Positions 2,270 through 64,000 of a DNA stretch of 64,000 nucleotides are shown here, piece by piece (position 1 is the first letter of the stretch; the number at the start of each line of letters is the position of its first letter). A model generated the notes under the pieces. The model did not search any database, had not been told where the DNA came from, and saw nothing but the letters and a program-made list of their open reading frames with translations. This DNA comes from Amoebophrya sp. A120 (Eukaryota; Protista; Dinoflagellata), in assembly GCA_905178155.1 (NCBI GenBank), contig CAJINV010000008.1, positions 2,533,762 to 2,597,761 of the forward strand. The letters are read 5' to 3'. Both the position numbers and the translations under genes were made by a program.

Positions 2270-5200
2270 CTATGCAAGTAAGTACATGCTCACAGCCGCG
2301 CTGCTTTGCGCCGACGACGCTAGCGACGTACACACATTTCCCGGCCGCACCGGCTGCGCCACGCCCGCAATGGAAGCCGACGACGGCTTCCGCGAACGTA
2401 CCTCTGCCTCTCCAAACTGCACGGCCAGTGCGTTCTTCTTCTTCGTGCCCTCTGCGGAAGTTGGGCTGCCTGTAGTTCAGTGGTGCAGGAGAACAAGAAT
2501 TCTTGGACCACGTCGATTAAGTGAAAATAGAAAACCTCTCCATACAACTTACTGCCTTCAACACCAAGCTACATTTCAGGATGCGGACAGACTGTACACG
2601 TGGGGCATGCTGAGCGCTCGACGGCTTTGCGCTCCTAGTACTTGTGGCAGAAAAAAAAAAGTATACCGAATTTTAAACTCTATGAATTCCACCATTTTGA
2701 TTCTACCATTTGGCTGGTCTCCCGCGGCACCCAGCCCCTGCGCCCCCTGCGCCTCCAACGACATGGCCTGCGCCACGGTCAGTTCCGCGCGGTCGGTGGC
2801 CATACCGGTCTTCAAGGACATCGTGGCCTGCACGCCGTCGTCGGCCTCGTTTGGGGGCGTCGCGTGCGCGGACCGCGAGGGTGACATTACCCGACTCTCA
2901 AATGGCGAGGCAGCGATCGAAGCGGCAATGGAAGCCGCGATGTTGGGGGAGTTACGCGCACTGAACTCCTGCAGCAGGTCATCGCACGGAAAAACTTGTA
3001 TGGCGGAAGTTCCTTGTTGAAGACACAGTTTTCTGTCATGCTCGACTACATGCTGACAGAGATGACCAGCGCGACCCCTATTCAAGTATCATTCGTCGTC
3101 TTCGTTTTCCTTTAACTTTGCTTGTTTTGTTTCTGCTTGCTTTACACACGTCAAATCATGACGCAATAACGTCAGAGGTTTCTCACAGGTGGCGCCCTGT
3201 CTACTTACTAAAAATGCACGTTGTTTGTGCTGCTGTTAGGGTCGGTGTGCAAAGGTAGAGTTATTAGTATTACACAACCAGTACAGTTTTTTCCTGTCGG
3301 ATACTCGTTGAACCGCTCCAAGTCGATTGGTGCGCCGAGTGTGGCGCTCTAAAGCGTTGCATTGACAGCGGTTACACGAATAATAATTTGTGACGCAAGA
3401 TCAATGTGAATAGCAAAAGCGAGAGTGGGAAGTCTGCGCGTTTTGCAATTGCATGTACAAATTACGGATTGCCATGCTGCTTGGGGGCGCTTTGAGAATT
3501 TTTCACACGCAGTAGCATGATCGTGTGAGCGTGGAATGGAGACTAACACTAAAGGTGACCGATTTTGCATGACAAATCGTGTGGCAAGCAACCTATGTCA
3601 CGCTTGCAAACGTCATACCGAGCACCGACCCCTTGCGGATCTGGTTCCAGAGGAGCGCCTCATGCAGCGCGTTCGCTGCGATGGGCTTCTTTTCGTCCGG
3701 CTCCTCGTCGGCATTTTGAAAATCCGGCGCCGTCTCGTCCACAACCACCGACGTTGCCTGGATGATGGTCCCGTCCGGCGACAGGGCCATACCGGGCGCC
3801 AGACCCGGAAGTCCGCCGGAGAAGGACTTCGCCCGCGGCCGTTTCCGGTCCATCTCGGCCGGGTTCAGCAGTTTCGACGCCGGGTTCCGCTGGAAGGTGG
3901 ACGTTTCGACGGTGGACTTTTTCGAAAGCTGAAACTGCCGGAAACCGTTGCCGTTGGTTCCCGAAGAACTACCCATCGCCTTGCCGTCCTGCTGCGCTGT
4001 CCTCGTGGCCGCGCCGCCACTCTTGCTCGGAAAAGAATTGTCCGCGGCTAACGTGCCGATTGATGTTGTAAGTCCCCCGCCGGGGCTCCGCGGCACGATA
4101 TTGTTTCCTCCGTGCTTATTTTCAGCTTGTTGGGATGATGGAATACTACTATTTCTCGGACTGCCCGTCACAATCGCATCGGAGCTGTTGCTTTTTTTGA
4201 TGCTGCGCCGCCGGCTTTCGTGCAAATCGTTCGTGGTAATCGCAGATGGTCGTTTTCTCGAGACTTCCTGCCACTTGTCTTCGATGATACTCTTCCGCCG
4301 CTGTTCGCTTGCATCTTTCTGCTTCTGCTCCTCGTCTTTATTTGTCGAAGGGGGTGCTGAGTGAGAGGTCTCTTCGTCTTTCTGATCATTTTCCACCACG
4401 ACGAGGCTGTTCTGCCCTTGCGGTTCTTTCGACGTAAAGTCCTCTGACTGCTCTACCCCTGTTCTTGGGGCAGTAGTTTTCTTTTCGGTCGTAGTATCTA
4501 CGCTTTCCGCCGAAGTAACGGTGCAGCTTGCGCCACCGTTCTTGTGGGCCATCTTGGCACCAACAACAATTACCTGCGTGTCAACCGGCGTTAGGGGCCG
4601 TGACCGCTCTTTCTCCTCGCTCCCTTCGACTGCTGCAGACACCGCATTAGTACTCAAAGCAGGTGGCGATGCTGTATACTCAGGGAAAAACTGTGATACA
4701 GAAAAAAATTTGAAATTTTGTGTCGCCGAAAAGAGCAGCATTTGGGCGCGGCTACTGACACAACTTGCAGTTGCAGATATGCCGCAAGTGGCGCCGAGAA
4801 CAGGTAAGTAGGTGGTCAAGGTGATGAGTGTGGTCGTTTTCCGGCTGCAGCGATAGCAGCCGCGGCAGGTGGTGGCTTAGATTCCGGGACCACTGCGCGG
4901 AGCCGGCGTGGTCGCTTCTAGATGACCTTGCTTCTATGATTTTAGAATGCATTTCATTGATTTTGATAATAGGTTAACTAGCTAGCTGGCTAAAGTAGTT
5001 TAGCAATAGATAAATGCCTGAAATGCAACTATTTTAGCACGCAACTAAGGGAGTTTTCAACTAGCCGGATGAGGAGGCATCGGAAGCCCAAAAATGCTGC
5101 ATATTCGCGTATACAGGTCGGTACTAGGGTAGGAAGTGCCCTTGTTGCACCATAGATGGTGCAACATGGGCACTAAGGGGCTGCTATAGGACGGTGCTGG

Positions 5201-8200
5201 CTCCAGATCTGATGCCGATATTCGACGCCACCAGCTGCTTGGGACTATCTAAACCGACTCCCTTAGTTAGGAGCTAGAATAGTTGCATTTCAGGCAGATT
5301 AGTAGCTATATTCTACGCTTTAACTAGTTCAAAATAGCGCATTCCGTATGATATTATCTATAGTATTTTGCGGTAGCTACGTCAATGATTTTACTAAGCA
5401 AAAACTCACCGCGGCGTTGGACCAGAGGATCATGTCGCAGCCAAAACGCACAGGTACCGCCGCCGCCCCGGTCATCGTCAGCGCCGCTTTTCGTCTTCCG
5501 AAGACGACACCTAGCTGACAACTTTGCGAGGATGCTTTGTCATCCAAATGCAAATTACTTTACTCGCATCCCCACCGTTGGTTCGAGTCAAAATTTCAAA
5601 TTTTTTTCTGTATCACAGTTTTTCTCTGAGTACTGTATAATTGGTATTCATATGGTTCTTAGACGCACTCTGCACCCAGGAGGATGCTGACCCCACAGCT
5701 TCTGCTTCGACCACGTTTTCGCTCTGCAGACCGCCGCGAGTTGTAGTGTCATCTTCTTCCGAAGTTCCTCGCGGCACCGCTGGCAGACTCGTTGCATTGG
5801 TCTCAGAGTTGTTCGCGGTAGAGTTCTCGCTTCCATCCTTGATGTTCAAGCCTTGCGCTTCTAGTTCGCCTGCAGTACTTTCATGTGCACCATCCATTCG
5901 GTCCCCTGCCAGAGCAGTCCCGGAGGTGTTCGCGATAGACGTTGACTATCAAATGTAAAAATGTCTGAGTCTGGAAACTTGTGATGCTGGGTGGCGTCTC
6001 ATGATGAGGCCACAAATGCTGGCTCAGCATCACAAGTTTCTGAGCTTCTAGGTTTTGCCTATTCTGCATGAAAAACTGCGTTTCTGCATCACAGAAAAAT
6101 GGAGCTCTTGGATAACGTGGTCCATGACAGATTTATGAGTCATCCCAGACAAGCATGACAAACATGCACTCTTCCAGACCCAGACACTTTTACATTTGAT
6201 ATTGACTTCAGGCTGACAATGTCGCGCAGGCCCGTAACGGAGGTTGCGGTTGCGGCTTTCATCCCTTGATGCTGTTGTATACTAGAAGAACAATAATTCT
6301 TGACGTGCCCTGCTCCAGAAACTGCTGCAGCCCGTGAAGATCCGTGCGACGATCCTGCTGCTACAAACTGCCCGTCCTGGTCGACTTGTTCCAGCAAGGT
6401 CTTCATGCCCAGGTGCCCTCCTTCCCCGCGCTCCAAATCCTTGGAAATCGCTCGAATATCCGTGGGCGGCGCAGATCCTCGCAACCCGTCTGCCCGACTC
6501 CCGCTCCTGCCGCCGGACGCTGCGGGTTCTTGCTGGCATCCTTTCTTCACAGCCATTCTCATACTTTCGTCGTACAGATGAAACTGGGCAGCAGTGCCTG
6601 TAAAAACTCCTGCTCTGATCGCGGCCAGCAACTGCAGACAATTCTCCGCAAAGGGTCTGGACGAAAAAAGCACGGCGACTGCGTCGAGCAGAAGCCCGCC
6701 GTAGTCACCCGCTGCAAGGATGAAAAAGAGCAGCAGGACCGGGTAGCGCAGGAATCGCGATTTGGCTACCAGAAACAAATGCTGCGACGTTTGCTGGTCG
6801 TCCGATGATATGACAGCAGCAAGTGCAGCGGCGCTGCTCGTATTTGATGAAAAAGCGGCTTCTAGAGCTCCATCGCCACTTTCGTTCGACGTGGTCCCTG
6901 TCAGACGCGCGGGTGCGGGTCTACTAGCGCCGTACACTTGCAGCATGAAGACCAGCAGCAAAACACCGGTCTTTTCCCGCATGCCGGAAGTCCACAGGCT
7001 TCCCATGGCGACGGCTTGTACGAGCAGCAAGAGTCCAGTAGAAGAAGGTGGCGAGTTGTGCAGCCTTGACGGTATAGCCACACCATCATGCTCGAAGACG
7101 AAGTTCTTACCGACGGCAGTCCGGGAAAAAAATAAGCCATCAACAAGGGCTATCAGCGCGGTCGAGACGAGCGTGATGGTTGAAATACGAGTCACAAAAC
7201 CTTGCTTCTCTTCCGGCGTTGCGAGCTCCAGCAGCAACCAGAGGTGGTACGTCAGGATGGAACTCAAAAGCAAACCGTTTCCGAGCAGTACGGGAGGAGC
7301 CGGCTTGTTGGATAGCCACAGCGACACGGCTGCATCTGACTCCATCATGCGGCTCGCTGGCGATTCTATGGAGCTGCTTGTCAAATTGGCTGTACTTGAT
7401 GTAGTCCCGGTTGGTGCGACGACTGTGAATAGTCTGCTCTCGTCCTTCGCGCTCTCCGGCACACTCTGTTTGCCGCTGTTTCCGCATCCGCTCCTTTTTT
7501 TTAAAAAGAGAGACCGGAGGAGCATGCTCAAGTCAGTAGCCAGCGACCCGGCCCTCTGCATCACGCGGAAAATGTTGGCGCAGAACACGCAGACTGCAAC
7601 CACGGCACTCTTTTCAATCGCCGTCGCTGATGTGCTACTCGAGAAGGCGCTCTGAAGCACGAGCGCCGTCGAGAAAAATACCGCCGGTAGGTATGCGGCA
7701 ATTGCGAACAGCTGTAGGAGATGAAGGATTGCGGATCGGTTTTTTTGTTGATGTTCTCGCGGCACCGCGCAACATTCAACCAAGTCCCCTCGTGGCAATA
7801 CTAAGTGGAAAAATGTCTGCAGCAAAAAAAATCAAAATTTTTGATAGTGCAGTTTCTGTTCTTCTCTTCTCGCCCGGACTGCAGCCCGCTTGCGAGCGCC
7901 GTGGACTCCGTGCTGGGGAACTTGACCGAGGTGCTGCGCTCCATTCCTGCGTCGTTTGTTCGAAGACCCCGCGCGAGGTGCAATTCTAGTCCAAAAAAAG
8001 TGGCCTCGGAGAAGGTCGACTCGGGGATGAGCTCAAATTGCAGGCTTTTGCCTGCGCATTGAGCTCGATACAGGTCGGACCCTGCGAAAAGGGCGGCCGC
8101 AATTTGTCGCCCCGGAGGTCCTCGACTCGGGACGACTCCGAAGAGGTGTCCGAGGACGCCTCATCTGGAGGCCAATCTCGGAGGTGCAGACGTTTTCCGG

Positions 8201-9610
8201 AGCGCAGACAAACACGACCTATGAGCCCCACTTTCCCCCCCCCCTTCCGGAAAACGTCTGCACCTCCACTCGGGGACCTCAGTGGCCGAGGTGCAGACGT
8301 TTTCCGGAAAGCCACGTTTTGCATCACAAATCTGAACCCTCACAGCACGGCATGCTGCTGATGCAGGGGTTCAGATTTGTGCTTCGGGCCACAAAGTTGA
8401 CCCAAGACGTGGCGCAAAAAGTGGCAATGTGTAATTCCACATGGCGGCCTGTGCCTTCGCGCAACAGGTGCAGGGGGGCACACGCCCAAGAGCCTGAGAG
8501 AGTCAGCCCGCACGCCGGGCATCAAGATTTTTTTCGTTCTATACGATTGAGCACGATAACAAACACCCAAGAAAAAGCCTCGCTCTGTAGTGTGTCAAAA
8601 ACAACATTTTGATTTATCCAGGAAAAAAACTGTGTAAGTGTAACTTTGTAGGCAGGGCAGCATCAAAAATTCGTTTTGCACTTACAGAAACACCCTGTCA
8701 AGCGCACTTAATACGTGAAACAAGTATGCAGCATGGCTATGTAGCAGATCCAGCATGACAAGTGTAACTGTGTTGCATTTTCTGCATCACAGATTTACAC
8801 TTACACAGTTTTTCTCTTGAATATGATTTTTTTAGCTGCAGACATTATTCGACTTAGTAGGCACCGCGCAACATTCAACCAACTCCCCGATCGGAAACAG
8901 AAAGGCTGCAACAGTCCCGATCAGCACTGCTGCTTCACCAAAAATCGACGCTGCTACGGCCAGAACGGTCGCCTGATTTGTTAATGATGAACTCTCAATC
9001 AGAGGAAGATTTGATGCCTGAACTAGAACTTCTCATGCAGCTGATGTTGCTGGTTGCATCCAACAGCGAATCTGCTACAGCAAGAACAGAGACAATAATT
9101 TTAATTCATGTTGAAGTAGCGTCAGACGGAAAAAAATGCAGGAGCCAGTGGTCGACCTCGACTGCCTCGACCTATGCGCCTCAAACATGTGCTCGCTCTG
9201 CTTCTTACCGCGAGAAGCAGCAGACTTGGCACCGCTCGAGGATACACCGCACTCGCCGCTTCCCCAGGAAATTCATCATGCGCGGACGTTGCGCGGATCC
9301 GTGAGAGAGCAAGAACTATACCGCCGCCCAGTAGCGCCAAAGGGGCAGCGAACCAAGCGATCACATCACGCGGTTGGTGCCCGTTATCTCCAGTGAGTAC
9401 TCGTAGGCCGGTAGTTAGCACTGCAGCAGCCGCGAACAAGAGGTGCAGCGAAAGAAAGGAGAGTGCCCGCCGTTTGTGGTGCCGTGTCGCTCCGTCGAGC
9501 TCCGAAGATTCTTGTAGTCTTCGCCCTTCTTCATGGTGCGCTGCGGGAGCCATGTTACGTGTCTGGCTGTGTTCGCCCCACGAATCGGCTTTGCCTTGCG
9601 TTGCTGCCAT
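2270..9610 (-). CDS. Multi-exon hypothetical membrane protein (hydrophobic N-terminal half, Ser/Thr/Gly-rich C-terminal half)
   Basis: ORFs 6140-7825, 5613-5897 and 3593-4819 join in frame once the TIR elements plus one TSD are removed: ...GELVECCAVP|RGDLVECC (7799-8859), SLKS|TSIANTSG (5947-6201), NYT|ASPPAL (4677-5632). Weaker in-frame joins extend the gene to ~2270, possibly ~1626. The link to the 9122-9628 exon and both ends are uncertain. Confidence 0.6.
2980..3303. mobile_element. Eroded TIR introner (family C-like)
   Basis: Ends CATCGCACGGAAAAACTTGTA / rc TATCCGACAGGAAAAAACTGTA; flanks CAGGT/CTCGT; removal is in frame with LQEFSARN. Confidence 0.5.
4677..5632. mobile_element. Large (956 bp) TIR introner, family E
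   Basis: ~42-bp TIR TACTCAG(G/A)GAAAAACTGTGATACAGAAAAAAATTTGAAATTTT; perfect TSD CTGTA (4672-4676, 5633-5637); removal restores the frame. Confidence 0.92.
5947..6201. mobile_element. TIR introner, family A
   Basis: TIR TATCAAATGTAAAA(A/G)TGTCTG(A/G)GTCTGGAA; perfect TSD TTGAC; homologous to 39222-39476, 62643-62895 and 63776-64000. Confidence 0.95.
7799..8859. mobile_element. Large (1061 bp) TIR introner, family D, containing a nested element
   Basis: TIR TACTAAGT(G/C)GAA(A/T)AATGTCTGCAGC.AAAAAAATCAAAAT; flanks GGCAA/GGCAC; removal restores the frame. Confidence 0.85.
8615..8823. mobile_element. TIR element, family C, nested in the right TIR of 7799-8859
   Basis: Left TATCCAGGAAAAAAACTGTGTAAGTGTAA, right TTACACTTACACAGTTTTTCTCTTGAATA; perfect TSD TGATT. 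Confidence 0.9.
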
Positions 9611-12654: not shown

Positions 12655-13812
12655 TTTTTTTCCGTCGTCTCGTGACACGAGATAGTCGGTGCTTCCGCTT
12701 GCGCAAAATATTTGACCAAATGGATGTGAAACACGGAAAAATATTTTTCGACTTGTTCGGCTGTCACTGTCTAGCTACTGCATATTTCCGTCGAATTGTT
12801 AGGAAAGTAATAAAATACTTGACAACGATGTTCGCAGTTAGAAAAGCTAAACCTTGTCGTCTGTCGCGGTCGCTGTAATTGTGAAACACAAATGATCAAT
12901 GGGATACGAACGTCATCTGAACCTATTTTTGCTGATCTAAGTTTTGTTGCGGATGAGACAGAGTGCGACTTTCAGTGGAAATAATGGACAGCAACAAAAA
13001 GGGATCGATCGTCAGAATCGCCTGTACGTAGCGCATCTCGTCCACAAGAATCATAATTACTTCATTCGGAACTTTTTGTCCACAAACCATTCCTCCTTAG
13101 GGAATACTACAAAATCTTTGCACGACCAGATCACGTTGAAAAAGATTGCCTTCCCGATGATGTTTGTTTGTTTGTTCTCATGCGGGAAGGTGGGACCGCG
13201 TTTACACACCTTTTTTCTCTAGCGCTATTTCAAGAAAAATCCCTGCTTCGAAAGCCTGTGAAAAAAGACAACAACTAAAACCACTTTTCCTACAACCATT
13301 GAAAAAAGACAAATAACTCTTTCTCTGACTATTTCTGCTTGCTACTGAGCGATTAGATTTGCACTGATTTTGCTCGAAAATGGAGGATCAAGATTGCCTT
13401 CCCGATGATCATTTGTCGCAAAATCAAAAACACAACGAACCATGTTGAGCATGACCACCAGGGCGAGCGGCACCTGCTGGTGAAATGAATTTATTGTCAA
13501 CAAGCCAAGTAGCTATATGTATATTTAGGAAGCGAGCGCCGGCACGTAACATCTATATTCCCGTGTTGCACTTATCCAGGAGGCCGCAGGAACACTATAG
13601 CGACCAGAAAACAATCCACATGAAGTCCTTTGGTACAACACCTCCTCCGGTCGTGGAAAATGAAAAAAGTACAGTACAAATGGACCAGACTGCGGAATTC
13701 TAATGATAGTACTCAGCTATCGCAGAAACATACAACAGTAGCTAATAAATACCTCCGATATAATCAGCGAGAATGAGTAAGTAGACAACAAGTCGAAACC
13801 AGTGCAGACTTT

Positions 13813-15773
13813 CTACAGCATCCTTGCCGGCTGGTGACCCGGGCCGGGTTCGGTCGGATTGTGCAGAATGCCGTCTCCTCGGACCCTGTCCCCCCGCACC
13901 CCGTAGGGGAAGTGGGGGCTAACCTGCTGCGGGCTGATCTTCGCGGCTTTGCCGAAATCCTCCGGCACCGGCTCGATGGGGTGGTGCGTGTGCCGGACCA
14001 ACGTGCTCGCACGCCACCCGGTCATGCTCTTGGTCGCGTCCATGAACATCCGCGGCATGTTCTTCTTTTTGTACAGCTTCTGGCGAATCAACCACTTGCA
14101 CTTGTCCCCGTCGATGCCCATCGGCGCCACCATGCGCGACGGATCCCGGTACTCGGGGATTTATCAAATGTAAAAATGTCTGGGTCTGGAAGATTCTAAA
14201 CTTGTAATGCTGTCTCTGGATTCTAAAAAATAATGTATTGCATGACCAGCAAAAGGACTCCAGTTTGTGCTACGTGGAAAGGGCATTTCTCATGCGGTAG
14301 AGGCATCCCAAAGTCCTCTAAAAATCTGTGATGCTAGGGCATGCATCACGGACATCAAGGGTCATTCAAAATATGCATGACAAACCTGGCAATCTTCCAG
14401 ACCCAGACATTTTTGCATTTGATAGGATTGCGAACCGCACCAAACGGATGCTCAGCTCCTCGCAGACATACTTGTACAGCAAAAAGTCCGATTTGTACAG
14501 CGCCTTCATCACCTTCATCCTTCGCGACAACTATCCTGAGTAAAAACGTCCCCAACCCCCTAGTTGTCATGCAGATTTGCAGTCACAGGAAGATTTGTAA
14601 TGCGCATCCTCATGAGTATGAGAGGCATTTCCAATCGTGTTCTGGAAGTTGTGATGCTGTAAACAGGATGAGCAGAAAGATGGATTTGTGATGCTGTTGT
14701 CCTTGCTAACATGCACTACACTACGGAGTGCAACTTGTCATGCGTGGCTCCCAGAACTTCTGCATTTGTGTTGCTAAGTTCCCAACTTGACTCTGGGGCG
14801 GGGACGTTTTTACATATGATAACAACAGCAGGGTCATCACCCGTCTCGCCATGGAGTCCTTCCGGGTGCGGATCATGTGCGCGCGCAGGTTCAGGATTTT
14901 CTCCTATCAAAAGCAAATGTGTCTGGGTCTGGAAGAATGCCAGACCTGTCATGCAGGTTTTCCATGACCCATGAGGTCTGGCATGTAGGACAGAGCATGA
15001 CAGATTCTGTGAGAGTTCTATCATGCCTATCCTGCATGAGAAACTGCCTCGCGATTAGGTCAAAAGTGGACAGCTTTTGGCAATCATGCAACACAGATTT
15101 TTACACGATTCAGATTTAGCAAGACAAGTTGCTCTGTTCCAGACCCAGACACTTTCGCATTTGATATCTCCGTCAGGCAGGCGATCCGCACGGCGGGGGA
15201 GTTCGTGTCGAAGGGCGACACTTGGAACTTCCGCACCAGGCACCGCTTGCGAAACTGGTGGAGTTCTCTCGAGGAAGCGGTTTCCAGCGTGAGCAGATCT
15301 TTGACGTGCGTCGGGAGCTGGTGCACGTCGTCCTCCGTCAGCTCTTTCACGTAGTTCGTCACGGAAATCGGGTTCCCCTCCACGTCCTGCTTCATGCTAC
15401 TCAGGGGCACCACGCTCCGCTGCTTCAGAAACTCCCGCTCGCGCGCAATCTGCCAATCCGACCGCGGGGTTTCGCAACGAATCGGCCGGATACCCGTGTA
15501 CCGGTACAGGCGGTGACACCGGTACCCCTGGGACCGCACAAACCGCTTTCCCTGCAGGTTGTGGTACGTCGTACAAGTTGCGGGCTTGGAGGTGCCCTGC
15601 TCGGCGGAAATAGATGTTGTTGGGCATGATAATAAAGGGGGCGCACGAAACAGTGCACCACGACTGGAAGAACTGCTGCAACTACTACCCGAAGAGTGCA
15701 GGAACACAACAGCCGCTGTACGGCTCTTCGGCGCGGGGACGGCAGAACAGGGGTTTGTGAGAACGAGCTTCAT
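13813..15773 (-). CDS. Bacterial-type ribosomal protein uS15, probably mitochondrial; 4 exons
   Basis: Spliced product ...RKFQVSPFDTNSPAVRIACLTE|KILNLRAHMIRTRKDSMARRVMTLLL|SRRMKVMKALYKSDFLLYKYVCEELSIRLVRFAI|PEYRDPSRMVAPM... matches the S15 pattern DTGS-x-xQ/RIAxLT...HL...KD...RR...Y...L. Ser/Arg-rich N-terminal extension. Confidence 0.8.
14162..14424. mobile_element. TIR introner, family A
   Basis: Family A TIRs; perfect TSD GGATT; close relative of 43289-43550. Confidence 0.95.
14532..14821. mobile_element. TIR introner, family B
   Basis: Left TATCCTGAGTAAAAACGTCCC, right GGGACGTTTTTACATATGATA; perfect TSD ACAAC; homologous to 39530-39808. Confidence 0.93.
14905..15166. mobile_element. TIR introner, family A variant
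   Basis: Left TATCAAAAGCAAATGTGTCTGGGTCTGGAA, right TTCCAGACCCAGACACTTTCGCATTTGATA; perfect TSD TCTCC. Confidence 0.93.
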
Positions 15774-16538: not shown

Positions 16539-19500
16539 TCACTTCGAGCCAGAAGAAGTTGTCGCCAGAACTTTGGAATTGCAGTACTCCCGAACCAGCT
16601 GTGACGTATCCAGTACGAACGTGCTATCGCGTTCGCGGTCACAATTCGCACGCATTATAACTTGACACGATATTCTTCATAGTGCATTACAGTGCTCTAT
16701 TTTCCTGTGGCTATTCTTCAATCATCGTCACAAATTCAACTTCACGCGAGCGACTTCATGCATACTATGAAATCAATCGTTTAAAGTCATTGTTGTACAC
16801 AATTTACACACCACGCGCGATAGGTTTGCAATGTTGATACGACACCTGCCCGAGCAACTTATCTGCCTCGAGTCTCTATGCATTGCGAATATGTCTGCGT
16901 TTGGAAAGAGGCAAAATTGTGGTGCGAAGTCAGTCTGGACCTTCGCTACACACCATACATCAATCTGCAGAGCCGCAGTCTGGGTCACACTAAAACCTGG
17001 GTTGCGTGACCGCCAAAACCCGCCCCCTTCCTGCTACGCACAGAGCAAGTTTCCAACCAAGAAGCGGGGAAAATTTATTGATAAACCCATGAACCTGTAA
17101 AAAACGCTTTTGCATGCATCCATTCAAAGCCATGGCTCGTTTGTTTCCCGTCCGTCTCGTCTCCGTGTTGCACGGGGTGCATGACAAACACGTACACTCT
17201 ACTTCCAAACCGACCAAGCCTATTTGTATTTGATAGCTCCGTCGCTGCTTCCGCGTACACCCGAATCACGTCTTCCGTGCCGCTCGGACGGGCGAAGGCC
17301 CGACCCTTACCGACTGCCTGCATCGCCTCGTTTATCGCATGCTGCAGTCCCAGCGGCTGCACCACCTTGGTTTCGTCGTCCTCTTCGGTTTTCAAAACCG
17401 CGCGGTCCTCCACCAGCACCTTGGCCAACCGGTTGGGAAGATCCGTGTACTGTGCCAGCCAGTCTTCTTCACTCCACCCGTAATGCCGCAGAATGGCCTC
17501 GACGCCCAGCAAGTCAGAAAACGCATCGCCCACAGACTCGTTGATCAGATCTCGAAAAGCCAGCAAGTGCTGCGCGGCGCGGTGGGCGGCCTGTTTATTT
17601 TTGAGAAACAAACGAAATAAATAGTTTCTTGCTGGTATCTTCACCGAGTAGTAGTAGAGATGTTGACACTGTTGTAGGAAGAGGAACACGATCAGCTCGG
17701 GAAAAACAATTATCTTCACGCGCATATTTTGCTGTAGCAAGTGTCTAGTGGTACTTCATGAGCGTTTATACTGCAAAGTAACCTAAACGCCTCCAAAAAT
17801 AGCCGGAGGGAAGTGCATATGGTAGTGTAATATGTGCGTTTATTTAGATATTACGTCTCTTAACGACGCCGTTCGCAGCGCAATCCCATTGACGCTATCG
17901 ACAAACTTCTGCGAAAACACAATGGTGCCGTGCCCATTAGCTTCGAAGTAGATGCCCACATCGAGCTGCTTTGCTATGCATCACAAATTCCCATGCCTCA
18001 GTCTGGATTTTTGATGCGTGGCTTGGATGTTGCGAGTGCGACAAAGCACCGCAACATGAAGAGTAGTTGTGAATTTCCTTTTTGGAGGCAAGAAGCCCCG
18101 CGAAAGAACGTCAGGCCGTGTACAGGTTGTAAAGACAGATTATTCTGCGACGCACGAACGAAGGAACGCCAGTCAATTGCATCTTCCAGACCCAGAAAAA
18201 TGCATGTCACTTTGCAGTGGATAATCGCTTTCTCGTGGCAAAATTTCACACCCGTCTTCGCCAGGATTGGTGGTTTGCCATTCAAAACACTCGCGCCGTA
18301 GGCAACCGAGGCTCCGTTGGCGTACCCAGTCTGCACGAGGCCAATCTTCAACACCTGGTCCAGCCCACAGATCGCCAGTTTCTGCCCCAGAAATTTCGCG
18401 TAAAGAGTAGCAATGCGGTCGCCGTCGAGCAGCGCGAATTTGTCGTTTCTCAACGAGTAGTAGATGAGCCGATCTGCATCCCCGTCGAACGCGGCATATC
18501 TCCCGTCGCCCTTGCGGTTCTGCGACGGCTGTTGGTTGGACTTCACGAAATCCGCGCCGCAGTCCTTGTTCAAAACACCTTCGCCCGCGTTGAAAAGCTC
18601 AATGCCATTATGCACTGCAAATATTTCGTCTTGGCCTGGAAACTTGTTTTGATGCCACAGCTGTAGATCACGATAGGTAGATGTCATTATCACGCAGCCT
18701 GGCGTGATAATATTTTTCGCTGGTGTGCTGTCCTTGACCTTGCTGCGCATTCCGCATGAAGAGAGTCCGCTCTTTTGCGTTCGCTTGACGGTGACGCAGC
18801 TAGCAGTGTTCCATAAAAATATACGCATCACAGACCTGTGAATCATGAAGTGCGATTCTAAGTTGAAGTTTTTCTATGTTTGTGCCGTTTTTCAGTCCCA
18901 GACAAAGACGTCAAATGTGCAACGCATACTCCAGCCCGGGGAGCAGAACGCCATTGTTCGCTGCGAGACCAACTTTCGTGAACAGCTGCACCAGTCGTAT
19001 GCAAGACAGAAGTAAGTGTGCAGTCGCTCGTAGGCACTTCTACTGAACGTCAGTGTTGTGCGATTTGTACTTCTACGTGAAAGAACTCATCTACTCCTAC
19101 TCGTTATGTTCTTTCAATTTCATCTACCTGTGCAATGGTTCAGAAAGTGCCTGTGTGCATTGTAAAAATGCTATACGCACATGCTTCTTCTGAACCTCGT
19201 AGTCCCACCTCTGGCAGCACTGCCGCGCATGCGCTAATGCAAAACTACATATACAAACATCTGCCCGGTCGATAACTCTTGCTCCCACTCCATTCGCAGC
19301 GTCAATGTAAAGTTTGGGGCAATAGTTGCTGCTCGACTGCGACGCGGCAGAGGTCGTGGAGCTCTTGCTCTGCTCCGCTTGGAGAAGCCCTGATGAATCT
19401 CCCTGCGGGGAGCTACTCGCGGCGAAACCTTTTGGCAGCAAGCTGGTGCGATTCACGGTGTTCCGCCCACTGGTGGCGCTCGTGGCTGCCGTATGCGAAG

Positions 19501-21866
19501 AAAGAGGTGCAGCTGCTGTGGCGCATTCCAGTGATGCAGCGCAACCGCAAGCAGAAGGAGAAGCAACACAGACCAGCTCTGTCATCCGTACGATGCTCAG
19601 GACGTTGAGCTGCCTGTTGCTATGCATGTCTTCTCGATTGATCCCCGCATAATTGCAGACTTCTCTTCTCCTGCAGATCTAGCTGAAGTATTGCAGCAGT
19701 TGCGAATAAATCCGCAAAAATTGAAATGCGTATCAATGGTGCCACTTTTTTCTTCGCATATGTCGCAGCTCCGCCGATCCAGCCCTGCTCCAGGGAGCGA
19801 AAGCGGATCCAGGCGGAAGACAGCTTCGTGATATACCCGCAGGCGTCCGCGACCTACGAGGTGGGTATAGGCTAATTATAAAATTTTATTCTGTTTATCA
19901 TCGTTCTGCAGCGAGACTTGGCTACTATATCTCAATCTCGTGCGCCCACAAAAGTTCTTTCAACTTGCGGTGCTCTTGATTATCTTCATGTTGAAAAAAC
20001 GATCATCACGGACCGAGCAACCTTCATCGTCCCGCAGGAGCAAATTGAAACAGACTGGCGGGACAGCGTGCAATAGAAAAACTACTAGACGTCGTAATTC
20101 TAAGCAAGTACCCCGTAACTCGGTGAGTTCCAGCACCGGACGTAGAAGTGCAGTTGCGGCGTCGTGCACAAGCCTACGTACTTCGGGGTTCCCCCGAGCG
20201 CCGACACGCCCTCGATATATGCATTGCAAATATACTCGGATGTCGAGAACCCTGAGCTGCTAAACTGTCGTGAAGGATGGGCGCACTACAATACGCAGCC
20301 AAGCGTGGCAAGTTTTTGAGCACCTTATCTATGTGTTCCGCTTCCCCCAAGAGAAAACTTCATTTTTCAATGACTTCACAGTATTTTCATTTGCAAGAGG
20401 CTTTATTTTTTCATCCTGCTCATGCATTCGACAAAAGCACGACGGACTTGCATTCTTCCAGTCCTAGAGATATTTGCATGCAATGAATACGATCGCCGCA
20501 AGGGCCAAAGCGGGAGAAGAAGGTCGCGTGTCGCAGCCGATGAAAACCAGAAGCATCCCGTCTAAAAACGTCCCCACCTCAGAGTTCTTGTCATGCATAT
20601 CTGCAACCCTCAAGAAATGTTTGTCATGATCAGCCCCAACATCAGGAGCATTTTCTAACGCCGTCTAGGACTTTGTCATGCTCTACTTGTTGAGTAATCA
20701 GGAGGAGACACTAGATTTGCGATGCGGCTACGCTAGAAAAGCACGATTACGCAGAGGTCATGCGCAACAGCCAAATCCTTAAACGCCTGGATGTGGATGC
20801 ATTTGTGTTCATTCCGAGTGGTCCCCATCTTGACTCTGGGGTGGGGACGTTTTTGCTAAGGATAAGAGGGGGAGCACTGCTGCTCTTTCTCGATACAACT
20901 GGCGTGCAGCTGTTGAAAGTTGCCGGGGACGTCCCTCCCCCTATTGACGCACTGCTTGCCGCCGCACTCAATCTGGGCTTCGCCAGGTCGATCTTCTCCA
21001 TATCGCAAATGCTCGCGAGCCGTTCGGTAAGCAGTTCCTCGGGACAGTTGCACAGTGTCGTCGCGATCTGTTCGAAATGCGGAGCTAGCATGTCGCCCGT
21101 GGGATCCACTAGTTTTACCCCGTTGTCCTCGACCGGGTTGTGACTGGCGGTCACCATTATACCTGACCAAAACAATTTCTTTTCGTTCGGAAAAGAACGA
21201 AAAAGATTCGGTTGTGATGGCTAGTCATGTAGTCTACTCTCTTTCCTGTGTGCTGACTTCTATTCGTGATGTCAAAAAAATGCTGCGCCGTAGCATGCTG
21301 TTCGTCTGCATAACACGAAACAAAGAAGCAGCAGACGTCGCGCCGGTGACTTCTATTTTGACACTAAATTCAACATGGATCGCGCGCCATGCATCTCCAA
21401 TAATGACCGCGAGATTTCTGTATCGCTATTAATCAATCGAAACTCTCCCAACTTCCAGCAGTGACCCTTACCGGTCGCCTTGCCTGTTTGCTTCGCTCGT
21501 AGCACCGCTAGCGCCCCCATCCGAAAGAGACAAGCGTCCAAGTTTTCCGCTTTCGAGCGAAATCCCGCGGTTCCGTAACTCAAACTCGGCACGCCGGGCT
21601 GCCTAGGATGCGAAAAGTCTGACTTTATCTTGAAGTCTCGAAACTGCTCCTGCACGTGCTCCAAAACCGGCCCAGAACCCGTCGCGATCGCCGTCTGCAG
21701 GCTGGCGAAAGAGTGGATGCTTGCTCGCTGGACCCCTCCAAGACCGACGGGCGGCGGGGCGTGCTGGATCGAGACGGAAGTTCGAAGGGGAATCGACACT
21801 TGAGACACCAGGCCGGGGGTGACAATGGGTGGCGGCGCAGATATTGTCGACGTCGCGTATGCCCCA
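16539..21866 (-). CDS. PGM3: Phosphoacetylglucosamine mutase (PGM3/AGM1), about 12 exons
   Basis: Motifs in order after splicing: [100 protein letters not shown], then [17 protein letters not shown]...stop at 16539. The 5' end is uncertain (possibly ATG 22367). Confidence 0.93.
16607..16839. mobile_element. Eroded TIR introner in PGM3
   Basis: TATCCAGTACGAACGTGCTATCGCG vs rc TATCAACATTGCAAACCTATCGCG; flanks TGACG/CGACA; join QVS|QLVREY. Confidence 0.7.
16877..17235. mobile_element. Eroded family-A-like introner in PGM3
   Basis: Left end TATGCATTGCGAATATGTCTGCGTTTGGAA; flanks GTCTC/GCTCC; join AATE|LEADKL. Confidence 0.7.
17975..18223. mobile_element. Eroded TIR introner in PGM3
   Basis: TAT...ATA ends, internal CTTCCAGACCCAGA; flanks TTTGC/ATCGC; join HEKA(K/M)[14 protein letters not shown]. 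Confidence 0.7.
18609..18928. mobile_element. Eroded TIR introner in PGM3
   Basis: TATGCACTGCAAATATTTCGTCTTGGCCTGG vs rc TATGCGTTGCACATTTGACGTCTTTGTCTGG; TSD degenerate; removal plus 5 nt is in frame. Confidence 0.6.
19492..19760. mobile_element. Eroded TIR introner in PGM3
   Basis: TATGCGAAGAAA at both ends; flanks TGCCG/TGTCG; in-frame join. Confidence 0.75.
20218..20489. mobile_element. Eroded TIR introner in PGM3
   Basis: TATGCATTGCAAATAT vs rc TATTCATTGCATGCAAATAT; flanks CGATA/CGATC; join AAI|EGVSALGG. Confidence 0.75.
20554..20864. mobile_element. Family B introner (older copy) in PGM3
   Basis: Left CATCCCGTCTAAAAACGTCCCCA, right TGGGGACGTTTTTGCTAAGGATA; flanks AGAAG/AGAGG; join PPL|[11 protein letters not shown]. 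Confidence 0.85.
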
Positions 21867-45958: not shown

Positions 45959-47904
45959 TCACGCGACTTGCAAGAAAGACCGGTTGGCAGCACGACCGGT
46001 GGAGCCGTGCTGCCGAGAATTCGTCCCCGTTTGCGCAATGTGCAAATTCAATTTGGCTTTGAGACGCTCGACATCGTTGTGCAATTGCTTGGCGAGTTCT
46101 ACCAGAGACTGGTGGTGGTCCGTGACGTGCTTCTGCAAGTACTCTTCGAGGTTCCGTTATCAAAGGGAAAAATCCCCCCTCCCCATATCGAAATGGAAAT
46201 CTGTGATGCAGGATTTGGCTACACAAATCGGACTTGTCTTGCAGTAAGGCATCGCAGCCAGGTCCTCGGCCTAGGTAGGGGCGTATAGGTCTAGTTGCTT
46301 AGCATTGCAAACGGGTGCCCCCTAGGCGCAACAGCATGCCAAATCGCTTCCATAATGGTGCGGAAGCCTCTGCGCCTGTCTTCTTGCAAGACAGACGTGA
46401 TTTGTGACCTCAAATCAGCAACACAAATTTTCGGAAACATACCTTTTCGATATGGGGAGGGGGGATTTTTCCTCAGAATATCCGTTGAGTCTCCGTTTGT
46501 TCCGTTTCCACGTAGGTTTTCACCCCTTGAATCTCCTTCTCGACGTGAGTAAGCATCCTTTGCACTTCCTGAGCCACATTATACTCCTCGCCGACATGTT
46601 GATCCTTCTGCGGTGGTCTGGTGGCCACGTACAACTGGTCGCCCCCATGTTGATCCTTCTCGTCCCACCCGGTGCCCGTGCCCAGGGACCGCGCCGAATG
46701 GAGTTGAGTTTCGTCCGTGGTGCCGTCCTTTTCATTTGGGACGAGTACAGTCGATTCTGGACTTGCAGCTCTCTCCAATTCCAGCAGCGACGGCGCTTCC
46801 GGGACGAGCTGCGCGGGTTCATGGGTCGTGGCGCTGGCGTTCGTGACCTGCACAAAAGATGTGCTGCTTGTTGTACCGACTGAGCTCGGCTGCAGAGAAT
46901 TCGTCTGCAGGGGCCCGCTGTGCAGCGTGTGGTCCAATTTCGCCTCGAGGCTCTTCATGTCGCCACGCAACTCCGCGGCTAGCTGCGAAACGGACTGATG
47001 AAATTCCGTCACGTATTTGTGCACGTAGTCTGCGAGGTTGTGCCAATTCGCGGTTTGTTCGTCTGCCACGTATTGTCTCATTTCTTTCACTCGTTCATTC
47101 ACAAACTGGTCGCCCGCGTTCTTCTGCTCGTCCACGTGGTTGGATATATCGGACAACCACTTGTCCACAAAGTCGACGAGGAGGTCTTGCGCAGAATTCA
47201 TTGGAATTTGCTCCCTGGTGCCAGCCCTGTAGTTCCTCACGATCACGGTCGGACTTCCGCTCGTCAGTCCCACTAGCGAAGCGGCGTGGTGGGTTCGTGT
47301 CGTGACTAAACCCGCGGCGGCCGCCCCGCCACCACTCGACCCCACGGCCCGCGGACTTTCATTGTCGCTTGGTCCAGCGGGTTCTTCTTGCGACTCAAAG
47401 GCGCTGCTTGTGTTTGCTGCGGTGCTCGTGCTGCTCAGACCACCATCTTCAAGATTGACTTATCGTGGCGAACAGAAGAGATACCGAGCCCCTAGACCTC
47501 TGGCTCTTTCCTCGTCGTGACAATGTAGCGGGCCGAGGCCGACTACTCTTTGTATTGATTTGACGCAGCAGAGCTGATGGTGCCCTGCATGCTTGTCAAC
47601 AAGGTATGGTAGGTTTTTTTCATATTTCTATTGCGGAGCCTCTTCTTCGTGAAAATGATTCGCATTCGCGGCAATTGCTGCAACGCGGCCTATTTACAAA
47701 CATAAACTATGCAAGCAGGTGCAGCAAACCAGAAATACTTAACCTAAAGTTCTTGCGGTCATCGATATCAAATTTCTCACGACGTACTGTTGAGGGGGAG
47801 TCATTGCCGCAACATCCTCGTTCCAGCAGCGACGTTTCGGGGAGATCTGGCGATATGCCTGACCTTTTCTCCGTAAAACTGGTCCCCGCCATGGGACGGT
47901 GCAT
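45959..47904 (-). CDS. Hypothetical protein with two internal helical repeats
   Basis: ORF 46473-47345 continues in frame after 46158-46480 (TQR|NLEEYLQKHVTDHHQSLVELAKQLHNDVERLKAKL...SFLQVA*), mirroring the earlier NLADYVHKYVTEFHQSVSQLAAELRGDMKSLEAKL. The 5' exon (via a weak element at 47461-47855) is uncertain. Confidence 0.65.
46158..46480. mobile_element. TIR introner, family I
   Basis: TIR core GAAAAATCCCCCCTCCCCATATCGAAA; perfect TSD TCCGT; homologous to 60605-60930. Confidence 0.95.
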
Positions 47905-48507: not shown

Positions 48508-48530
48508 ATCATCATCATCATCATCATCAT
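48508..48530. repeat. (ATC)n microsatellite
   Basis: About 7 tandem ATC units. Confidence 0.8.
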
Positions 48531-50258: not shown

Positions 50259-50684
50259 CTACAAACACCTACACGACCACGACGCATGATGCGCAGATAT
50301 GTATATATTTTTATAAAGCATAATTTGTACCGCTGACCGTGACTCTCCGAGCGCAACTCCAGGTGGCGGCGAAATCGTGTTCGTCGTCCTGCAACCTCCC
50401 GCTGTCGTTCCTCCTGCAGCACCAGGCCCCCGATTTTGTGTCACGAGGGACGCCGTCTGCTGCCCCCCGCCCATGATCTTCAGCTCGCGAACTTGGTTCT
50501 TCAAAGACTCAATTTCCTCCTTCAAGCCCGCGACGCTTTATTCAGCCGTTCTTGGATCGCTTTGGCGGCCGTGAACCTGGCTCTTCAACGACGCCACCTC
50601 CTTGTTGAGTCCGCCTGCCAAGGCCGTGACTTGCTCCTTCAGATCGGCGATCTCTTTCGCTTGCTCATCGACGATTTCACTCAT
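50259..50684 (-). CDS. Small coiled-coil protein
   Basis: Two same-frame heptad-rich ORFs (MSEIVDEQAKEIADLKEQV...; LKEEIESLKNQVRELK) separated by one TAA. The 3' end is uncertain. Confidence 0.55.
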
Positions 50685-59500: not shown

Positions 59501-61024
59501 CCGCGGCCGCGTCCGGAGCGAAAATCCGGGCGGCCGCTATTGTTCTCAGCACCCACGGTCGTGGAGCTGGTACGTACGAGCTGCACATCGGGGAAGACGT
59601 TGAACAGGGGACCACCCGAAGTCGTAAATGAACGCTCCTGATCTGCAGAATAATTCTGATCCTCCTGATCCATATCACGCCGGCGCCTCGTCGCAGGAGC
59701 CTGTTGCGGCTTCCCGACCTTGCTGAGCCGGATTTTCAGGGGGTTGCGCTGTAAATGTAGGTTGCCGCAAAAGTACACTACCTGAAATGTGTGCGTCGAG
59801 CGGGGAAGGTGCACGGGCACGAAAATCGTGTCCAAATCCTCCCACTGCCGCTCGTGCAGCTGCCGCACCACCAGGTCCATGCGATTCCGATGATCCGGTC
59901 GTGCTGCAGTGGCATTACCGCTACCTCCGAGATTGGTCTGCTCTCGTCCCTGCTCCCCTCCGCCGGTCGTTTTTGATGCAACTTGTTCCGCAGTATCATG
60001 TCGGCCTCTGTTGTGGTGGTGCAACAGCAAATTTTCTTCGAGCCACACCCGTACCTTCCTGGACTTCCTCGATAGCGTCGCGTGGATCAGAAACTCCGCA
60101 CAGACCACGGGTTTATTCTTCTCGACGTTGCTTAAAGTCGTCGCCTCTTGTTCTTTTTCGTGCGGAGGTGCCTTAGCATTTATTTTCCGTCTGCTACTTT
60201 TCGGCGCCACAAAGAAACGCTTTGCGGGGCTGCCTTGCTCTGGTGGCTTCGCCTTTCGCGCGGACGAAAACAAGGATGTGGCTGAGATCCTCCTAGTTGT
60301 GGTTTTGGTTTTCGTTGGTGAGACTGAGGAGCTCTGTGTGGAACTGCAATCAGCATAATAATTTCCAGCACCGCCGCGTGACGAGACCGACCCTGCTCGT
60401 CTTCTAGTTGTCCGCGCTCCTCCTGTCGCGAAAGAAGACGAAGAGGACGACGAACAGCTCTTATGCTTGCCATAATTCTGGTAGAGATACTTGTTTTCGG
60501 GCAGAACCAGCCCAAAGTCGGGCGAATGCAGGTCCCTCCGTACTTTGATCGTCCACTGGTACGCCGTCTTGCTCGTGCTCGCGAGCCGTCCCACGTTTTT
60601 GCTCTATCAAAAAGAAAAATCCCCCCTCCCCATATCGAAAACGAAATCTGTGGTGCAGTATCTGAGTACATCACAGATCGCATTTGTTTTGCTGGAGAGG
60701 ACTGCAGACCCATATCAGGCCTGAGTAGAGCGGCTTTGACTTAGGCGCTTAGCATGAAAAGCGTCCGTGATGTTGGCTCAACAGCATGACAAACCGGCTC
60801 TATAATGGGACGGAAGCTGCTGCCCTTGTCTTCTTGCAACACAAACGTGATTTGTGACCTCAAATCAGCAACGCAAATTTTCGAAAGCCTACCTCTTCAA
60901 TATGGGGAGGGGGGATTTTTCCTTGCGATATGCTCTCCTCCACGACCTCCAGCAGAGACGCGTCGCTCGTGCTGGTCTCAATGTGCTGGCGTCGACCAGA
61001 ACCACAGGCGGAAACGCCCTTCAT
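56566..61024 (-). CDS. Large hypothetical protein, mostly low complexity, with two short beta-rich N-terminal modules
   Basis: The 1342-codon ORF joins in frame to an upstream exon (VEES|KNVGRLAST) across 60605-60930. Start codon uncertain. Confidence 0.7.
60605..60930. mobile_element. TIR introner, family I
   Basis: Family I TIRs; perfect TSD TGCTC. Confidence 0.95.
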
Positions 61025-62069: not shown

Positions 62070-64000
62070 TCAGCCGATTTTCTTCCGCCATATGTAGATT
62101 TCTTGCTGCTTGAAATACCTTAAAAATATTTGTATGAACAAGTTGTACACACGATCTTCACCGGGAGTAGCTGTTGTTTGCAACGACATTTTTTGCATCT
62201 TCTTCTTCGTAGTTCATGTTCCCTGATGAAACAACAAATGGAAATGACTCGTCCAAGTCCTGAGAGACAGCTACATATTAACCAGGTTCATTGATTTCTT
62301 GCTGTTGGTAGTGGTACCCCATTCCCATACAAAGGTAAAACATGTTCCTGTTGCACGTATACATGCTGTGCCCCCAGAAAAAAAAGTGACAAACTCCTAT
62401 ACCTCCTATCCTCTTCATCCACCAGCACCAGATTGAGAAAGTATTTCACCGAGAACTTGTTTTGTACGTTTTTGTATGTCGGCTGGAGGTCGACCCCCGA
62501 GAGGTAGAAGCGGACGGGAATGCATTCCCCCCGCACCGGCGCACCGTCCATGATTTCGAACTTGGTCAGCGTTTCGTTGTCGCTGCTCTGGTTCTGCGCA
62601 CCGGACCCCGTGGTTTCGCGCCGGATTATGTTCAGCTCCATGTATCAAATGTAAAAATGTCTGGGTCTGGAAGATTGCCAGGTTTGTCATGCTTGTCTGG
62701 CATGACTCTAAAATATGTCATGCACGTTACCCAAGAGCCCCACTTTGCTGTCATGCAGAAACGCAGTTTTTCATGCAGAATAGCCAACACCTAGAAGCTC
62801 AACAGCTTGTCATGCTGCGCCAGCACTTGTGGCCTCTTCATGACACGCCACCCAGCATCACAAGTTTCCAGACCCAGACATTTTTACATTCGATACCATG
62901 TGCTTGATCTTGATTCGCACCAGCAGAAAGTACACCTTCCCTACCACCACATCCTTCATATGGTACTTGCTTTTATCGTACCTGAGTACAGAAGTAGTGG
63001 GGTGTCAAAACGAGCAGGATCTCGGTGAAAAGAATACTTGCAGGTTGTAACTGTAAGTGTCGGCGTCGGCCACAGCACAGCTACGTGATATGTAATAAAT
63101 AAATTACAGTGAACAAAATCAAAAACCAACTGTGAAGCAACAAAAATAAAAATCATGACAGAGAAGCAAGACACGTTGCAGTAAATACTCAAACTCGATG
63201 TGCAAGCAGTCCTCTATGCCGACCTCCATCTTGATGGTATTGTTGATGTCTGGAACGGTGAAGCTGTTGAGTACAATTTTGCATGTTTTTATGCCGCAGA
63301 TGCAGATGCACAAGGGCATCAGTAAAAACTCGCAACGAAGTTAAAGTAAAGTAAGTTATTTTATCAATACTTTGAATTACAGCTACAAACTAAAGCTAAA
63401 ACTTCATTCAACGTGCACAAACGAAAAACTATACAGGTTCTGCACGACGAGGTCGACTTCCTTGGTGATGTTCGAGCTATAATTCCTGACCACCACCAGC
63501 CGGACGAAGACTATCCACCGCAAAAGTGTCTCGCTCGTTTGGAAAATTAATTGTGATGCGCGGCTGGCATGGGTCTGAATAGATACTACAACTGCGGTGC
63601 ATATTCTTGCAGACATCATGCCGTGTGAAGATGTCGTGTATTGCTGAAAATCTTGAACAAATTGCTACCACCTTCAGATACATCAAAAATTTTCCAGCGA
63701 ATTTATTCTAGCAGAGACACCATGCGTAAAGTAGCGGAGCCGCACATTTATCCCTGAGTAGGTCTCGCACTGCTTTATCAAATGTAAAAATGTCTGGGTC
63801 TGGAAACTTGTGATGCTGTGTGGCGTATCATGAGGAGGCCACAATTGCTGGCTCAGCATGACAAGTTTCTGAGCTTCTAGGTGTTGCCTATTCTGCATGA
63901 CAAACTACGTTTCTGCATGACAGAAAAGCGCAGCTCTTTGGTAATGTGCATGACAGATTTAGGAGTCATGCCAGACAAGCATGACAAACTTGCATTCTTC
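62070..64000 (-). CDS. VPS26: Vacuolar protein sorting 26 (retromer subunit), 5'-partial
   Basis: [90 protein letters not shown]; three GT-AG introns and three TIR introns. Confidence 0.96.
62643..62895. mobile_element. TIR introner, family A
   Basis: Perfect TSD CCATG; removal restores IKHM|ELNIIRRE. Confidence 0.96.
63512..63728. mobile_element. Eroded TIR introner in VPS26
   Basis: TAT...GTA ends; flanks AAGAC/AAGTA; removal restores the conserved RY|FVR. Confidence 0.7.
63776..64000. mobile_element. TIR introner, family A, truncated by the window end
   Basis: Left TIR TATCAAATGTAAAAATGTCTGGGTCTGGAA; body near-identical to 5947-6201. Confidence 0.93.

Follow-up and report, generated by a model that had tools for sequence, protein, structure and literature searches.

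The window analysed here is a stretch of 64,000 nucleotides of the dinoflagellate Amoebophrya sp. A120 (contig 8, 2,533,762-2,597,761; positions below are counted from its first letter). It contains many short elements that carry terminal inverted repeats (TIRs) and 5-bp target-site duplications (TSDs) and that interrupt coding sequence, among others in the genes for VPS26, PGM3, and uS15. These are very probably the introner elements of Amoebophrya A120, removed at the RNA level. The phenomenon is already published for A120 and is correctly re-observed here, with no new biology; the present work makes a small addition, the phase of the junction as read from PGM3 introns with decayed TSDs.

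Non-canonical introns make up more than 60% of the total in Amoebophrya A25 and A120, and a subset of them, the "introner elements," has inverted repeats, direct repeats of 3-5 nt, and hairpins (Farhat et al. 2021, PMC7789003). In A120, there are 29,850 repeated introns (17% of the genome), the non-canonical introns average 240 nt, and the inverted repeat reads TAT, seven less-conserved nucleotides, and then at least three As (PMC7789003). The motif is strain-specific, the termini of A25 being TTA. The direct repeats overlap the exon/intron boundaries with variable position, and the position of the border is called unknown in that account. The U1 small nuclear RNA (snRNA) was undetected in A120, nearly all spliceosomal proteins as well as U2, U4, U5, and U6 were reported present, and the authors put forward an alternative mode of splicing (PMC7789003). 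Gozashti et al. 2025 (PMC12130899) assign the A120 introners to a variety of transposons, TIR elements among them, and these points recur in a review of 2024 and in a genome paper of 2025. An earlier note, made from the letters of this DNA, had stated both that such non-canonical introners with inverted and direct repeats are reported in Amoebophrya, as PMC7789003 indeed describes for A120, and that the mechanism of removal is not resolved; our literature search found no paper resolving it.

The elements of the window share with the published ones the TAT-N7-A-run inverted repeat, the direct repeats at the borders, the hairpin ends, the RNA-supported removal without GT-AG, the thousands of copies in many families, and the length (median ~260 bp here vs. 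an average of 240 nt). They differ from the published account, with its direct repeats of 3-5 nt, by TIRs that are clear and ~30 nt long, by a TSD that is always 5 bp among the perfect elements of the window, and by the indication of one fixed phase. Nothing in this is an essential difference.

Element removal in uS15, PGM3, and VPS26

The window was scanned for exact 5-bp direct repeats around termini with at least 20/30 complementarity, with ten shuffles as control. The scan gives 19 rows for 18 elements, the one at 39894 being scored in two registers; the shuffled sequences (n = 10) give 0-1. The 18 TSDs are all different and identical to the list of the earlier note. TIR scans at lower stringency, family profiles run in nhmmer, and a scan for pairs of terminal motifs bring to light ~18-20 further degenerate or near-perfect copies, for ~36-38 recognisable elements in all. 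The note had counted more than 40 in coding sequence: their abundance is confirmed, and a count above 40 is plausible, if not reproduced exactly. The long open frames of the window are on the minus strand, as are the features described below unless stated otherwise.

Three perfect elements lie in uS15: a family A2 copy at 14162..14424 (TSD GGATT; TIR 29/30), a family B copy at 14532..14821 (TSD ACAAC), and a second A2 copy at 14905..15166 (TSD TCTCC; hairpin z -9.5), inverted with respect to the first. Reads and contigs were examined over 13000-18999, with assembled contigs of run X3 as the transcript support. Run X3 covers exons only, with a depth specific to the gene (18.6 vs. 55.9), and is taken as complementary DNA (cDNA) for these two reasons. 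Its record 9 (1630 nt) consists of 15167-15962, a block of 78 nt, 14425-14526, and 13503-14156, joined at 15167/14899, 14822/14526, and 14425/14156. The skipped lengths (262+5, 290+5, and 263+5 nt) are in each case one element plus one TSD (the elements at 14905, 14532, and 14162, respectively), the last skip spanning 14157-14424. Two of the elements skipped in this single contig belong to the same family, A2, in opposite orientations. Since both are removed and since the 58 TSDs examined in total are nearly all different and without consensus, removal is independent of orientation and of target, as the note had inferred. The PGM3 introns are likewise skipped, in X3 record 11.

In the DNA-like run X1, on the other hand, contigs run from exon into element across the junctions, where the depth is that of the baseline (45.8 vs. 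42-46), and unique intron DNA is as deep as exon DNA. An exon-exon joint was sought among the listed DNA joints at 13000-18999 and none is present, i.e., there are no element-free DNA molecules among them. The DNA thus keeps the elements that the transcript contig loses, and removal is therefore from RNA and not from DNA; the "excision route" of the note should be read as pre-mRNA splicing.

Ciliate internal eliminated sequences (IESs) are derived from transposons, end in TA, and are removed precisely from DNA by a domesticated transposase. The present elements are similar to them as TA-ended transposon insertions in coding sequence whose precise removal keeps the genes working. A comparable excision of DNA in the nuclei that transcribe, with the "spliced" contigs copied from rearranged templates, would be in keeping with the TA-containing termini and with the exact restoration of the target, both of which resemble precise transposon or IES excision. 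Such an origin of the contigs is nevertheless very improbable: unlike with ciliate IESs, the elements persist in the DNA and are gone from the RNA, the X1 contigs that cross into the elements doing so at unique-sequence depth; the exon-exon joints expected of rearranged molecules are missing from those listed; and the same X3 contig, cDNA-like in its depth by gene, also lacks an ordinary GT-AG intron.

The proteins are continuous across the elements. The exons were searched singly and not as a joined spliced model, with only the split codons and a 30-nt micro-exon translated locally. Across the family A1 element of VPS26 at 62643..62895 (TSD CCATG; hairpin z -8), the Vps26 profile of Pfam is matched from 171 to 199, one split codon supplies 200, and the match resumes over 201-275. 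In uS15, across the elements at 14905 and 14532, the Ribosomal_S15 profile is matched to 27, then follow 1+25+1 residues, and then 55-81. In PGM3, across 17971-18224, AMG1_III is matched to 66 and the alignment of the next exon begins at 69, the two matches being separated by a single residue and a split codon. The observation of the note that deletion of an element with one TSD restores conserved motifs in these three genes is, therefore, borne out exon by exon. Over all 18 perfect elements, deletion of the element plus 5 nt puts the longest flanking open reading frames (ORFs) in frame in 12 cases, the other two frame classes having 3 each (P = 0.004). Half of the six failures are explained, those at 14162 and 14905 by RNA or Pfam evidence and that at 32212 because the element is in frame with the second-longest flanking ORF.

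With this evidence, it is scarcely credible that the loci are defunct genes littered with transposon insertions, or that cryptic GT-AG sites in the vicinity are used and the precision is an artefact; no observation in favour of either was made. For uS15, PGM3, and VPS26, both versions are refuted by contig joints that fall at element + 5 and by Pfam continuity to the residue, and the 12/18 vs. 3/18 frame statistic points the same way. The note had itself named retention of the elements, use of nearby GT-AG sites, and pseudogenes with intact paralogues as what would speak against it; the transcript contigs exclude the first two in the tested genes, and, because VPS26 and uS15 are both single-copy in the genome (115.5 Mb, 401 contigs), intact paralogues of these two are excluded as well.

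A few points weigh against this reading. The RNA status of X3 is only guessed, and the evidence from it consists of assembled contigs. The raw RNA runs X9 and X10, of the same species label, give at the locus five partial reads on a TIR (X9) and none (X10); these runs are probably from another strain or low in parasite content. The transcript evidence is limited to A2, B, and degenerate A-like copies; A1 is backed by Pfam continuity, and families C, D, E, F, and G by ORF frame only.

The 2026 RNA-seq runs X9-X11, whose species label is that of the genome DNA run, contain essentially no reads of the locus; the label probably covers different strains.

PGM3 introns and the junction phase

The PGM3 exons were mapped by tblastn with relatives at 67-75% identity, since the protein search gave relatives only and not the PGM3 of the locus itself. 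Five element-derived introns of the gene are skipped in X3. The one at 16607..16839 is an old TAT…ATA element with a decayed TSD (TGACG/CGACA). Between it and the next, a degenerate A2-like element at 16877..17235 (found by nhmmer and skipped in RNA), there is a putative micro-exon of 30-32 nt (16841..16872; a 30-nt gap in the record coordinates of X3 record 11), which translates (16841-16870/72) to the conserved C-terminus of PGM3. Two degenerate A-like elements follow, at 17975..18223 (TSD TTTGC/ATCGC; borders TT..AA or AT..CA) and at 18609..18928 (junction phase unambiguous), and then a second old TAT…ATA element at 18998..19274, where the loose end of X3 at 18993 resumes at 19276. The exon in between, 18930-18993, agrees with the X3 depth and with the loose end. 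An ordinary GT…AG intron without TIR is also present, at 17591..17854 (GTAATA…ACAG), and the X3 contig removes it. Both types of intron, canonical and element-derived, are thus spliced from one PGM3 transcript. The canonical intron has no terminal helix and is flanked by element-derived introns.

In perfect elements, the two identical TSD copies leave six possible junctions. In the five PGM3 introns, the junction is less ambiguous because the TSD copies have diverged, and in X3 record 11 and a loose end of X3 each skip is the TAT…ATA element plus exactly 5 nt. Expressed as (left, right) offsets on the + strand, the skip 16603-16840 (238) over the element 16607-16839 (233) allows (4,1), (3,2), (2,3), and (1,4). 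The skip 16871-17234 (364) over 16877-17235 (359) allows (6,-1), (5,0), and (4,1), and the skip 17971-18224 (254) over 17975-18223 (249) allows (4,1) and (3,2). With the skip 18605-18929 (325) over 18609-18928 (320), only (4,1) remains, and with the skip 18994-19275 (282) over 18998-19274 (277), (5,0) and (4,1). The sole phase shared by all five is (4,1), which on the minus-strand transcript places the 5′ splice site 1 nt ahead of TAT and the 3′ splice site 4 nt beyond ATA.

These offsets are suggestive of a fixed 1/4 junction phase, a ruler set from the element ends, which we consider about as likely as not. A common phase would arise by chance in ~4% of cases (p ~0.04) under a crude null that is uniform over six positions. 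Two circumstances count against the fixed phase: it comes from five introns of one gene, and the ends of the elements 16607-16839 and 18998-19274 were placed by eye with the skip already known.

A further element of PGM3, B-like, lies at 20554..20864 (TSD AGAAG/AGAGG) with its first base mutated (CAT...). Deletion of the element plus 5 nt brings ...EKIDLAKP... and VFIGCDTRP into the same frame. Beside it, at 20865-20975, are ~37 extra codons (RLSAAASS...SSSAPPL) between conserved blocks that are 2 residues apart in relatives; they represent a loop peculiar to the lineage or else an additional, unrecognised intron.

Splice signals, mechanism, and comparable systems

On the transcribed (minus) strand, GT-AG is possible in 0/18 perfect elements at any of the six junctions that the TSD permits, where the note had said that most elements lack such a junction. 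Among the 18, one element permits GA-AG and one permits AT-AC. End-to-end helices of 27-36 bp are present in 17/17 short perfect (young) elements, with z from -5 to -18, and the old PGM3 introns fold end to end (17-29 pairs) in 4/5. Genes for U6 snRNA are present in the genome, so a spliceosome exists. An Rfam search of the window matched no family.

The following sequence of events is the best supported. Non-autonomous TIR DNA transposons, of the class of miniature inverted-repeat transposable elements (MITEs), have inserted into exons in either orientation and by thousands, making a 5-bp TSD. The elements stay in the DNA and are transcribed, and pairing of the TIRs would form a terminal helix that brings the two splice sites, with the TSD copies, together. 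The cuts are not set by the target sequence; they appear to be measured from the element ends, 1 nt before the 5′ TAT and 4 nt after the 3′ ATA, offsets whose sum of 5 nt equals the transposase's 5-bp stagger. The element and 5 nt are removed as a non-GT-AG intron, which reverses the insertion in the mRNA and gives back the original frame. That the ruler might hold for any orientation and family, splicing being tuned to the stagger of the transposase by co-adaptation of host and transposon, is a tentative idea and somewhat improbable.

Against this scheme, the old intron 16877-17235 is spliced and has no terminal helix in its minimum free energy fold, so that a long hairpin is not strictly required. 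A search for U1 snRNA gave no match, a negative that is uninformative since the U2 control was likewise unmatched though U2 is reported present.

The catalyst is probably a modified spliceosome tolerant at the 5′ splice site, as proposed in PMC7789003; we infer this as the more economical choice because U6 is present and because the transcript that loses these elements has canonical introns too. Alternatively, and without the spliceosome, a dedicated structure-guided endonuclease together with a ligase could read the terminal helix or the TAT/ATA and cut at fixed distances, on the model of the suspected route of the nonconventional introns of euglenids, which are released as circles. We know of no such enzyme in any eukaryote, which counts against it, and we regard this route as unlikely. 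It would agree with borders that have neither GT-AG nor other constant dinucleotides, with removal in both orientations, and with cuts whose positions seem to be set by distance from the element ends, the 3′ tail exceeding the 5′ tail by 3 nt, in resemblance to the Euglena rule; the report of an undetectable U1 in A120 (PMC7789003) also speaks for it. The report of nearly all spliceosomal proteins with U2/U4/U5/U6 in the same paper speaks against it, with U6 confirmed here, as do the canonical GT-AG introns that adjoin element introns in the same transcript and the MITE-derived non-canonical introns of Fritillaria, which, according to a reference title in PMC11282704, are processed by the U2 spliceosome.

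The bulge-helix-bulge motif of the tRNA endonuclease was also considered and dropped, because the flanking exon consists of arbitrary TSDs that are unable to form the required helix on the exon side.

The nonconventional introns of euglenids (Milanowski et al.; PMC12501133) are similar in several respects: they are non-GT-AG, their paired ends are juxtaposed, they have TSD-like repeats and a suspected MITE origin, and their splice sites stand at a fixed distance from a paired motif, with the 3′ tail longer. The genetically defined rule in Euglena is 5′-N3CDG...CH'GN5-6|R (Nomura et al. 2025, PMC12501133). That signature is absent here, where the termini read N-TAT(C/G)...(C/G)ATA-NNNN: TAT/ATA is 1 nt in vs. 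CAG/CTG 3 nt in for the euglenids, with offsets of 1 and 4 vs. 3 and 5-6. The lineages are unrelated, and the ~30-bp TIRs belong to recently active families, unlike the short helices of Euglena. By analogy, a 3′ tail longer than the 5′ tail by ~3 nt, as in Euglena, would hint at a common and possibly non-canonical mode of splicing that measures a helix.

In Fritillaria borealis, recent TIR-bearing MITEs have also turned into non-canonical introns (Henriet et al. 2019, as cited in PMC11282704). As far as that citation goes, AG-AC and AG-AT are preferred there with a target-derived 3′ site, unlike here, where no border dinucleotide is conserved. With the classical introners of Micromonas, Aureococcus, Polarella, and others (Gozashti 2022, PMC9860276; Roy 2023), the present elements share the creation of introns by TIR/TSD DNA transposons in either orientation; those introners, however, carry or co-opt GT…AG and are ordinary spliceosomal introns, whereas no canonical sites exist here. 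The present case is among the clearest of transposons turning into introns at once, and recognition of introns without GT-AG bears on the origin of introns and on the flexibility of splicing. If the positional rule were true genome-wide, it would be a precise and mutable cis-code, namely a distance from TAT/ATA, and open to direct testing.

Families, genomic copies, and other elements of the window

About eight families can be told apart from their TIRs and interiors (A1, A2, B, C, D, E, F, and G). The termini are TAT...ATA in 17/18 perfect elements, the exception being TAC...GTA at 4677-5632, and all eight family consensuses have TAT at 1-3 and an A-run at 11-15 (TAT-N7-AAAAA). In the element of VPS26, for example, CCATG is followed by TATCAAATGTAAAAATGTCTGGGTCTGGAA...TTCCAGACCCAGACATTTTTACATTCGATA and then by CCATG again, and three further textbook elements are those within 14162-15166. 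The short elements are 155-326 bp long and contain no transposase ORF, and the window has no autonomous partner with matching termini. The hallmarks of MITEs are present: TIRs, a TSD of fixed length and varying sequence, and many near-identical copies. Family A occurs in both orientations with respect to transcription, as the note had stated. The interiors of the two A2 copies at 14162 and 14905 are 0.72 identical when one is reversed (0.61 direct), and the A1 copy at 5947 is inverted with respect to those at 39222, 42979, and 62643 (0.77-0.88 reversed vs. 0.61-0.65 direct).

The outermost ~10 nt occur in two exchangeable versions, TATCAAATG- and TATCCTGAG- (termini of the elements at 14532, 46158, 32212, and 8615), which are found across families; a single element may carry both, one at each end. 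Because of these two versions, the first ~8 nt are often non-complementary, and the helix therefore begins at the A-run. Many genome copies of family C align to the query from base 10 only.

A short motif, TTGTCATGC(A) / (T)GCATGACAA, with the variant GTGATGC, recurs inside the elements of families A, B, D, E, and G (e.g., at 62643-62895, 39222-39476, 14905-15166, 33220-33499, and 30255-30489). It is present in 1-5 copies per element, enriched 34- to 42-fold vs. the rest of the window, and it is oriented with the element, whichever way transcription runs. It looks like an internal transposase-binding repeat common to the families rather than a splicing signal.

A first look across the genome gives 3608 candidates for A1, 2653 for C, 2508 for B, and 1848 for E. 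In these four families, the copies that were scored (40 for each) have an identity of 85-98% (96-98% for B). Among 40 A1 and B copies fetched from other sites of the genome, the 5-bp TSD is perfect in 32 and has one mismatch in 5 more; 39 distinct TSDs occur among the 40, with no target consensus. Frame continuity at 40 copies elsewhere is a saturated measure, the 300-bp flanks reaching ~100 open codons in several frames.

The remaining copies of family A1 are at 5947..6201 (TSD TTGAC), where flanking ORFs of 543 and 108 codons join in frame once the element and 5 nt are deleted, at 39222..39476 (TSD GTCAC), at 42979..43231 (TSD ATTGA), and at 63776..64000. The last, found by nhmmer, is cut by the end of the window and has the same orientation as the copy at 5947 (strand not assigned). 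Family A2 has a further copy at 43289..43550 (TSD CCCGA), and family B has two, at 33220..33499 (TSD TCGTA) and 39530..39808 (TSD TCGCG; TIR 30/30). Family C is found at 46158..46480 (TSD TCCGT) and at 60605..60930 (TSD TGCTC), the latter between ORFs of 106 and 1343 codons that share a frame without the element and 5 nt. A search for homologous proteins with the 1343-aa exon gave no match in a set that apparently lacks the annotated A120 proteome. Family D is found at 39894..40104 (TSD GTTTG), family F at 32212..32366 (155 bp; TSD ACGAA), and family G at 33540..33849 (TSD CTTGG). The family E element at 30255..30489 (TSD GCGTT; TIR 30/30) lies between ORFs of 293 and 1037 codons, which are in one frame after removal of element + 5.

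The element with TAC...GTA ends at 4677..5632 is longer (956 bp), with a TIR of ~45 nt, the TSD CTGTA, and a nested inverted-repeat unit at 5009-5302. The largest ORF wholly inside it is not above 66 aa, and the flanking ORFs (104 and 358 codons) share a frame once it is deleted with 5 nt. A genome-wide search at E<=1e-60 found no second copy.

An A2-like element with imperfect flanks, found by the relaxed scan, is at 35594..35844, and deletion of the element and 5 nt brings its flanking ORFs (286 and 125 codons) into one frame. Its 5-bp flanks are poor (TCACC/TCTTC), and an 8-nt direct repeat (TCACACTC/TCACCCTC) is present 3 nt further out on each side (35583-35855).

A TIR element of ~1 kb at 7807..8851 (strand not assigned) contains near its right end a family D element at 8615-8823 (TSD TGATT). 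A direct repeat of ~30 bp (GGCACCGCGCAACATTCAACCAA.TCCCC) is present at 7760-7790 and 8860-8890, 10 nt before and directly after the larger element; it differs from a simple 5-bp TSD and may be a duplicated coding segment or the result of a rearrangement.

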